Below are positions 62,725 through 62,803 of a stretch of 64,000 nt of DNA, piece after piece. The stretch covers positions 91,078,001 through 91,142,000 of the forward strand of contig NW_027361728.1 in the NCBI RefSeq assembly GCF_039654945.1, read 5' to 3'. Made by a program: the position numbers and the translations under genes. The DNA comes from Dendrobates tinctorius (taxonomy: Eukaryota). A model generated the notes under the pieces. That model saw nothing but the letters and a program-made list of their open reading frames with translations. It did no database searches and was not told where the DNA came from. Each line of letters begins with the position of its first letter. Position 1 is the first letter of the stretch.

Positions 62725-62803
62725 AGGGTATTTAGTAAACATAATTTTGATCAAAATAATGTACAAGCCATCCCGCCACGTCACGGCAACCCTTGTGGGA
62801 CAG
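62725..62803 (-). ncRNA. Candidate HDV-like ribozyme, copy 1
   Basis: P1 CUGUCCC/GGGAUGG, J1/2 ACA, P2 AGGGU(U)/ACCCU, P3 GCC/GGC, L3 GUGACGU, P4 ACAUUAUUUUGAUCAAAAUUAUGU, J4/2 ACUAA. Confidence 0.6.

Follow-up and report, generated by a model that had tools for sequence, protein, structure and literature searches.

A candidate HDV-like ribozyme with CPEB3 architecture in a retrozyme-like insertion of the frog Dendrobates tinctorius

Does a 79-nucleotide segment of frog DNA encode a self-cleaving ribozyme of the HDV-like class in spite of several unusual core nucleotides, and, if so, how might the mobile element that carries it make use of self-cleavage? The segment lies in a 64,000-nucleotide stretch of the Dendrobates tinctorius genome, which was analyzed at its full length and is called the window below. 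Our preferred answer, to which we assign a probability of roughly 0.55, is that the segment is a real HDV-like ribozyme with the architecture of the CPEB3 ribozyme, that it serves a retrozyme-like element, and that the copy seen here, which carries G20, is a slow cutter. The fold is probably an overlooked variant of the delta-type ribozymes.

The predicted fold and its core nucleotides

Nucleotides are numbered here in the style of CPEB3, whose L3 loop has 7 nucleotides, so that the number of any position beyond L3 is one less than in the HDV-style count used by the first-pass annotation of this DNA. The elements of the predicted fold and its other copies in the window are as follows.

62725-62803, minus strand: candidate HDV-like ribozyme of CPEB3 architecture, copy 1 (C1 is 62803, the last base 62725)
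Between A62804 and C62803, minus strand: predicted cut of copy 1
62797-62803 with 62768-62774, minus strand: P1 of copy 1 (positions 1-7 with 30-36)
A8, C9 and A10, minus strand: J1/2 of copy 1
62789-62793 with 62725-62729, minus strand: P2 of copy 1 (positions 11-15 with 75-79), with U16 unpaired
62785-62787 with 62775-62777, minus strand: P3 of copy 1 (G17, C18 and C19 with G27, G28 and C29)
62778-62784, minus strand: L3 of copy 1 (G20, U21, G22, A23, C24, G25 and U26; G20 is 62784 and G22 is 62782)
62767 (C) and 62766 (U), minus strand: partners of L3 in P1.1 of copy 1 (G22-C37 beside U21·U38)
62736-62765, minus strand: P4 of copy 1 (positions 39-51 with 56-68; 11 pairs, two U·U mismatches and a GAUC loop)
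62735, minus strand: putative catalytic C69 of copy 1, directly after the last P4 pair
62730-62734, minus strand: J4/2 of copy 1 (UAAAU after C69)
63142-63220, minus strand: copy 2, the same as copy 1 over all 79 nucleotides, with U rather than G at upstream position -2
63711-63789, plus strand: copy 3, in the inverted arm, with a single C-to-G change at 63787 that breaks the P2 pair G13-C77
63331-63372, plus strand: 5′-truncated copy, innermost in the inverted arm, that retains just P4, C69, J4/2 and P2's 3′ strand

P1 is formed by seven pairs, two of which are wobbles (C1-G36, U2·G35, G3·U34, U4-A33, C5-G32, C6-G31 and C7-G30). In copies 1 and 2 each of the 27 pairs drawn is a standard one, and shifting the 3′ partners by 1-3 columns as a control leaves just 40-52% of cells paired. 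The predicted fold exhibits the nested double pseudoknot in which P1/P2 and P3/P1.1 cross. C69 is the first nucleotide after P4 and is followed by adenines, as in the catalytic segment of HDV-like ribozymes, and the conserved L3 nucleotides C24 and G25 of this class are both present. P1.1 is likewise present, in an orientation that is swapped relative to HDV and CPEB3. What the fold lacks is the U20 that takes part in a reverse wobble with G25 in HDV-like ribozymes, which is G20 in 3 of 3 window copies, and the combination of G1 with a G·U wobble at the cleavage site, where the frog pair is C1-G36.

The first-pass annotation had described this core as C1-G37, G22-C38, U21/U39 and G20, and in that numbering all of these nucleotides are indeed found on the minus strand. 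Its +1 pair, said to be C-G in place of the usual G-U or G-C, corresponds to C1-G36 in the CPEB3 count. The mismatch that it compared with CPEB3 agrees with the published U21·U38 of that ribozyme, and the G at the start of L3 recurs in all three window copies, each of which has GUGACGU as its L3.

The truncated copy cannot form the ribozyme. With a covariance model that we built from the three copies, it scores 48.7 bits (63320-63372), while copy 1 scores 113 bits. Just upstream of the predicted cut, GGGA at positions -4 to -1 can pair with U4-C7 of P1 to give a hairpin, GGGA-CUG-UCCC (62804-62810 and 63221-63227, minus strand), and in copy 2 GGUA stands in place of this GGGA. On the basis of such modeled pairing, the upstream GGGA is a possible attenuator of the predicted fold. 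An alternative register, with P1 starting from G3·U34, would provide the canonical wobble, but it leaves a P1 of 5 bp and no P1.1, and it was rejected.

The unusual nucleotides at positions 1 and 20 had raised the suspicion of a slow or dead ribozyme. This suspicion holds for G20, whereas C1 has an active precedent. In one review of the HDV-like family, G1 is called invariant and the G·U wobble essential. However, L1TcRz, found at the 5′ end of the Trypanosoma cruzi elements L1Tc/NARTc, is active in vitro: it cuts on the 5′ side of a C1 paired with G37 and leaves a 5′-OH (PMC3185411). The frog C1-G pair is therefore unusual but not new. By contrast, G20 is a liability. The U20·G25 pair positions the catalytic metal ion in HDV-like ribozymes, G25 mutants lose activity (PMC13635239), and the antigenomic HDV ribozyme mutated to G23/G28, the equivalent of G20/G25, still cleaves, at a rate that is 470-fold slower (PMC3386971). 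At the leaving side of the cut, A at position -1 is the best nucleotide, and the frog motif has A(-1).

Chance matches, database searches and folding energy

The reciprocal change in P1.1 had also been offered as an argument against a chance match. What remains of this argument is a compensated difference from CPEB3; a single Watson-Crick pair is weak evidence by itself. A core-only descriptor, which consists of P1, P3, the L3 signature and one P1.1 pair, gives ~2.7 chance matches per shuffled window, and the swap alone thus counts for little. The core-only descriptor has one extra match, at 57064 (minus strand), which was rejected for its many P1 wobbles, its lack of a proper P2 and its excessively long J4/2.

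The full descriptor demands P1 with 7 of 7 pairs, P3 with three Watson-Crick pairs, an L3 of the form NU[GC]NCGN, the P1.1 pair, a P4 of 8 bp or more that ends at C, a J4/2 of 3-5 nucleotides and a 5-bp P2. In the real sequence its matches are limited to 62803 and 63220, and it has no match in 300 Markov shuffles of the window. The resulting bound on chance, <0.01 per window, is optimistic because the descriptor was written after the motif had been seen. It is this whole-fold descriptor, together with the genomic context, that carries the weight of the case, and not the P1.1 pair. An earlier relaxed descriptor was too strict on P4, missed the motif while reporting ~37 other starts in the window, and was discarded as uninformative.

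Standard models miss the motif, as the first-pass annotation had anticipated. Rfam gives no HDV, CPEB3 or drz match for the whole window at gathering thresholds, and even at E <= 10 neither these nor any other ribozyme family is matched in 1.7 kb (62300-64000) or in a segment of 131 bases. Matches to COG2908, DUF805b and P9 at E <= 10 concern bacterial motifs and were set aside as chance. Our own covariance model finds no further credible copy in the window; its best other matches, at 51233-51305 and 29353-29429 (~15 bits), have no P3 and no C-G in L3. A metagenome scan with a 20-mer pattern that covers P3, L3 and P1's 3′ strand returned 7 bacterial contigs without P1, P2 or P4, which we ascribe to chance, and the same pattern has 0 matches in viral contigs.

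The folding energy of the motif gives no support. At z = +0.5, the 79-mer gains nothing over shuffled sequences in nested minimum-free-energy folding, a method that cannot include pseudoknots. P4 is weak (-1.8 kcal/mol), and P1 and P2 both rely on GGG/CCC triplets that are also able to pair locally. A local CCC/GGG hairpin and the upstream GGGA can compete with P1.

The main alternative is that the fold arises by chance. According to this explanation, the 79 nucleotides simply begin a conserved module (C1 to ~+245) of a trans-mobilized tandem retroelement whose RNA is never cut there, and the module is kept, for example, as an internal promoter or enhancer, for recognition by a reverse transcriptase or for compaction of the RNA. 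The missing G1 and U20, the lack of any Rfam match and the frequency with which relaxed descriptors match at random all speak for such an explanation. Nevertheless, we consider it somewhat unlikely, since the full fold is rare in shuffles, and since the segment lengths and L3 agree with CPEB3 and the change at position 22 is compensated at 37. Further evidence on both sides comes from the element itself and is given below.

The insertion and its relatives

The candidate ribozyme lies in an insert of 1338 bp (62546-63883) that is made up of 1.87 head-to-tail units of 417 bp and 1.3 inverted units. Its parts, with the sequences that flank it, are listed here.

62531-62545, no strand: left 15-bp target-site duplication, GATTGTTCAATACAA, identical to the right one
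62546-63323, minus strand: left arm, 1.87 head-to-tail 417-bp units, ribozyme sense minus (from repeat analysis and sequence)
63324-63883, plus strand: right arm, 1.3 inverted units, ribozyme sense plus
63884-63898, no strand: right 15-bp target-site duplication, a perfect match to the left one

The arms are joined head-to-head at 63320-63331 through a GGATG microhomology and a short stutter (TACATTAT / TGTACATTAT), features that are typical of template switching or of the joining of two cDNAs. The insert is very young and non-coding, with no open reading frame of more than 90 amino acids, and neither a hammerhead nor any other Rfam ribozyme is detected on either strand of 62300-64000 at E <= 10. 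Hence, with its non-coding tandem and inverted units, the insert resembles a retrozyme, although one without a hammerhead. The possibility of a tRNA-derived SINE was rejected, as ARAGORN finds no tRNA in the window.

The remainder of the window is also rich in repeats. Transposon open reading frames are located at 3244-6870, 14202-15143, 35198-36097, 41433-44072 and 57640-58617, and encode a Ty3/gypsy-type protease-RT-RNaseH-integrase, two Tc1/mariner transposases, a LINE-type endonuclease and a hAT transposase. Among window open reading frames of at least 180 amino acids, none was seen for a Penelope-type reverse transcriptase. Interstitial telomere-type (CCCTAA)n arrays occupy 60038-60116 and 60326-60889, the second of which has degenerate units and a higher-order period of 164 bp. 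A dispersed repeat with a period of ~390 bp is present at 59074-59794 and 61278-61949 in partly tandem blocks that are 64-83% alike.

The orientation and ends of the arms are informative about the template. In both arms the 3′ side of the ribozyme sense faces outward, that of the left arm toward the left target duplication, and these outward 3′ sides fit two-sided (twin) priming at a staggered break, which suggests that the template was of ribozyme sense. The ends of the arms fall at unit positions 258 and 174, neither of them at -1, and neither arm begins at C1. Reverse transcription crossed two predicted cut sites, and the copying, which stayed in register, went beyond a single unit. Ends that are not fixed, combined with copying across cut sites, fit a circular or multimeric template. 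The insert has no A-tail and no microsatellite tail.

These observations also bear on a second alternative, in which the ribozyme is real but trims 5′ ends in the manner of those in R2, RTE and L1Tc/NARTc, without circles, and the element is a non-autonomous partner of a LINE rather than of a Penelope-like element. All published HDV-like ribozymes of retroelements process the 5′ ends of non-LTR elements, C1-G37 and the CUAA of J4/2 are common to L1TcRz and the frog motif, and the window has an open reading frame for a LINE-type endonuclease and none seen for a Penelope-type reverse transcriptase. In spite of these points we regard LINE-type trimming as quite improbable. Fixed termini would be expected, whereas the arms end at 258 and 174 and none starts at C1; both kinds of tail are absent; the in-register copy is longer than one unit; and the joint between units occurs in four of four runs of related sequences. 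With non-fixed ends, in-register copying and this junction, a circle or concatemer fits better than a trimmed linear monomer. The copying across two predicted cut sites could also be taken as a sign that no cut occurs there, in keeping with a fold that arose by chance.

Because the three window copies derive from one insertion, they are not independent and hold no comparative or covariation information. Relatives were found as contigs of four public runs (four studies and two organisms, A and B) that were aligned to one unit at 80% likeness; their status as RNA is a guess. Across the four runs, 6 sites vary inside the 79 nucleotides (G20>U, A11>G, C9>U, G40>C, U46>C and A47>C), and none of the variants listed for these contigs falls in P1, P3, P1.1, C69 or J4/2. 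The A11>G variant, the sole paired-site change noted among relatives, still pairs with U79. C9>U, in J1/2, would pair with A81 in that variant and lengthen P2, and G40>C, U46>C and A47>C are all in P4. Position 80 is U in nearly all related contigs and adds an A10-U80 pair, so that the family consensus has one more P2 pair than the window copy. The insert has a plus-strand G at 62724 (and at 63141), corresponding to C80 in the RNA, where nearly all related contigs have A (U80).

The family consensus at position 20 had been named as a check on G20. U is the majority nucleotide in organism B contigs, a minority in one organism A run and absent from another. As far as these contigs indicate, G20 is specific to a subfamily and the family letter is U20. 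G20 is thus a property of this copy rather than a core trait of the family, and with G20 in place of the family's U20 the window copy is expected to be a slow or attenuated cutter. That relatives carry the canonical U at this position speaks against a chance fold. Independent variation at positions 22 and 38 of the earlier count had been put forward as grounds for doubting P1.1. In the four runs neither position varies, but covariation is not seen either. With G22 and C37 (in the present count) invariant within the family, the P1.1 swap cannot be used there as covariation evidence.

The pattern of variation around the motif can be read in two ways. Upstream of the predicted cut, ~29 of 172 sites are variable, with variation starting at -4, and a divergent subfamily differs at 24 upstream sites yet has the common sequence from the cut site onward. 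An HDV-type ribozyme requires nothing upstream of its cut. A boundary of the variable region within 4 nucleotides of the predicted cut argues against a chance fold. However, the 165 nucleotides downstream vary even less than the motif in the four runs, so the conserved block exceeds the ribozyme and conservation is not specific to the motif. A downstream stretch that is at least as invariant as the motif, and that holds octamer-like motifs, is what a module conserved for some other function would show. The two octamer-like motifs (CTGCAAAT and AATGCATA; 62691-62712, plus strand) lie ~95-115 nucleotides 3′ of C1 in the ribozyme sense, where the unit varies least, and may represent an snRNA-type enhancer, such as has reportedly been proposed for newt satellite 2.

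Long-range structure gives a similarly mixed picture. The unit folds below shuffled sequences in the ribozyme sense (z = -3.6; z = -1.8 for the complement). When the unit is folded as a whole, the ribozyme segment is paired with sequence far away in it, which would be consistent with the chance explanation. Nevertheless, the distant pairing is lost with the upstream variants of the divergent subfamily while the ribozyme segment is unchanged, and the long-range pairing is therefore not the reason for the segment's conservation. Contigs of the runs extend across the predicted cut site. The joint between units is found in all four runs, and an identical joint would be given by tandem DNA or by a concatemer.

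Taking these lines of evidence together, we favor an HDV-like ribozyme that serves a retrozyme-like element, and we infer self-cleavage, circularization and the identity of the reverse transcriptase along the following path. Ribozyme-sense transcripts of tandem units would fold into the nested double pseudoknot. C69 (62735), 3′ of P4, could then act as the general acid, with Mg2+ held near G25, and the chain would be cut between A(-1) and C1 (62804/62803) to leave a 5′-OH on C1 and a 2′,3′-cyclic phosphate upstream. A host ligase might close the unit-length RNAs into circles. A trans-acting reverse transcriptase, by analogy a Penelope-like one, could copy such circles repeatedly at a staggered chromosomal break, which would produce a tandem-plus-inverted insert with 15-bp target duplications. 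Against this explanation stand the absence of G1 and the G·U wobble and the absence of U20 in this copy, which by analogy with the HDV mutant would predict a 470-fold loss of activity. In addition, the related sequences exhibit no covariation and appear invariant at the paired core positions.

Relation to known ribozymes and retroelements

Published retrozymes, including those of frogs and salamanders and those in a 2026 Xenopus preprint, carry hammerheads. Frogs and salamanders are rich in non-LTR retrozymes, and in animals these are hammerhead-bearing tandem repeats mobilized by Penelope-like elements. The HDV-like ribozymes published for retroelements, on the other hand, are processors of the 5′ ends of LINE/non-LTR elements. 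In the literature on HDV-like ribozymes together with retrozymes, Penelope-like elements or Xenopus, we found no description of a delta-type retrozyme.

If the frog fold does cleave, retrozyme-type elements are not tied to the hammerhead, and delta-type ribozymes gain a second retroelement lifestyle beside the trimming of LINE 5′ ends. Descriptors that fix G1, U20 and C22-G38 would then miss a whole branch of the family, and U20 versus G20 and C1-G versus G·U would provide a natural series for studying the metal-binding pair and the cleavage-site wobble. A broader proposal, which we put forward only tentatively, is that an undescribed frog clade of HDV-like ribozymes, with CPEB3 architecture, C1-G and a swapped G22-C P1.1, drives an abundant and active circular-RNA element of retrozyme type in place of a hammerhead. 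Were this true, the nearly identical layout of L3 and P1.1 would point to a mobile-element origin of the CPEB3-type ribozyme in tetrapods. Even without cleavage, the locus would remain a clean and very young example of a tandem-plus-inverted retro-insertion of a non-coding RNA.

With HDV the frog motif shares the nested double pseudoknot, the C-G of L3, and the placement of the catalytic C (putative in the frog) in J4/2 and of the cut (predicted in the frog) at the 5′ edge of P1, whereas HDV has G1·U37, two C-G pairs in P1.1 and U20·G25. The P3 of HDV is GCC/GGC, as in the frog motif. In surveyed R2 ribozymes, C24 and G25 of L3 are invariant. The identity of the P1.1 mini-helix appears to be flexible, since its letters differ among fast natural ribozymes; U:A + C:U and U:A + U:U occur in those of C. 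briggsae and of an Ackermannviridae phage (PMC13635239).

The CPEB3 ribozyme has a 7-nucleotide L3 (U20, U21, C22, A23, C24, G25 and U26), a P1.1 of C22-G37 plus a weak U21·U38, and no J1.1/4. From position 1 to 38 its segment lengths equal those of the frog motif (P1 of 7, 9 nucleotides to P3, P3 of 3, L3 of 7, 3′ strands of P3 and P1 of 3 and 7, and P1.1 of 2). Both have U21 and A23-C24-G25-U26 in L3 (GUGACGU in the frog, UUCACGU in CPEB3), one Watson-Crick pair beside U·U in P1.1, no J1.1/4, and C immediately after P4 with A at +2 and +3. CPEB3 also has ACA after P1, like J1/2 of the frog. The frog motif differs in having C1-G36 rather than G1·U36 and G22-C37 rather than C22-G37, where the change at 22 is compensated at 37. 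It also has G20 in this copy (U20 in relatives), a long, AU-rich and weak P4, and a J4/2 that is one nucleotide longer. The Rfam CPEB3 model does not match it, and it resides in a repeated mobile element, whereas CPEB3 is a single intronic locus.

L1TcRz shares with the frog motif a P1 that holds three G-C pairs and has C1-G at its base, a location in a retroelement and its non-autonomous derivatives, and a CUAA that starts J4/2 in both, the L1TcRz side being reconstructed from the supplement and primers. Its L3 is UCAACGU (in the relative L1Tco) and its P1.1 consists of one pair, other than G-C; L1Tc was thus dismissed as a precedent for the swapped P1.1, and it supports only C1-G37. Moreover, L1TcRz has a fixed place at the 5′ end of a LINE flanked by target duplications, whereas the frog motif is found in every tandem unit. 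The frog element differs from retrozymes in that its unit has no hammerhead on either strand and its candidate ribozyme is of HDV type. Like them, it consists of non-coding units of a few hundred bases that are inserted as multimers between target duplications and whose structured RNA includes one self-cleaving motif per unit, which in the frog is the candidate described here.
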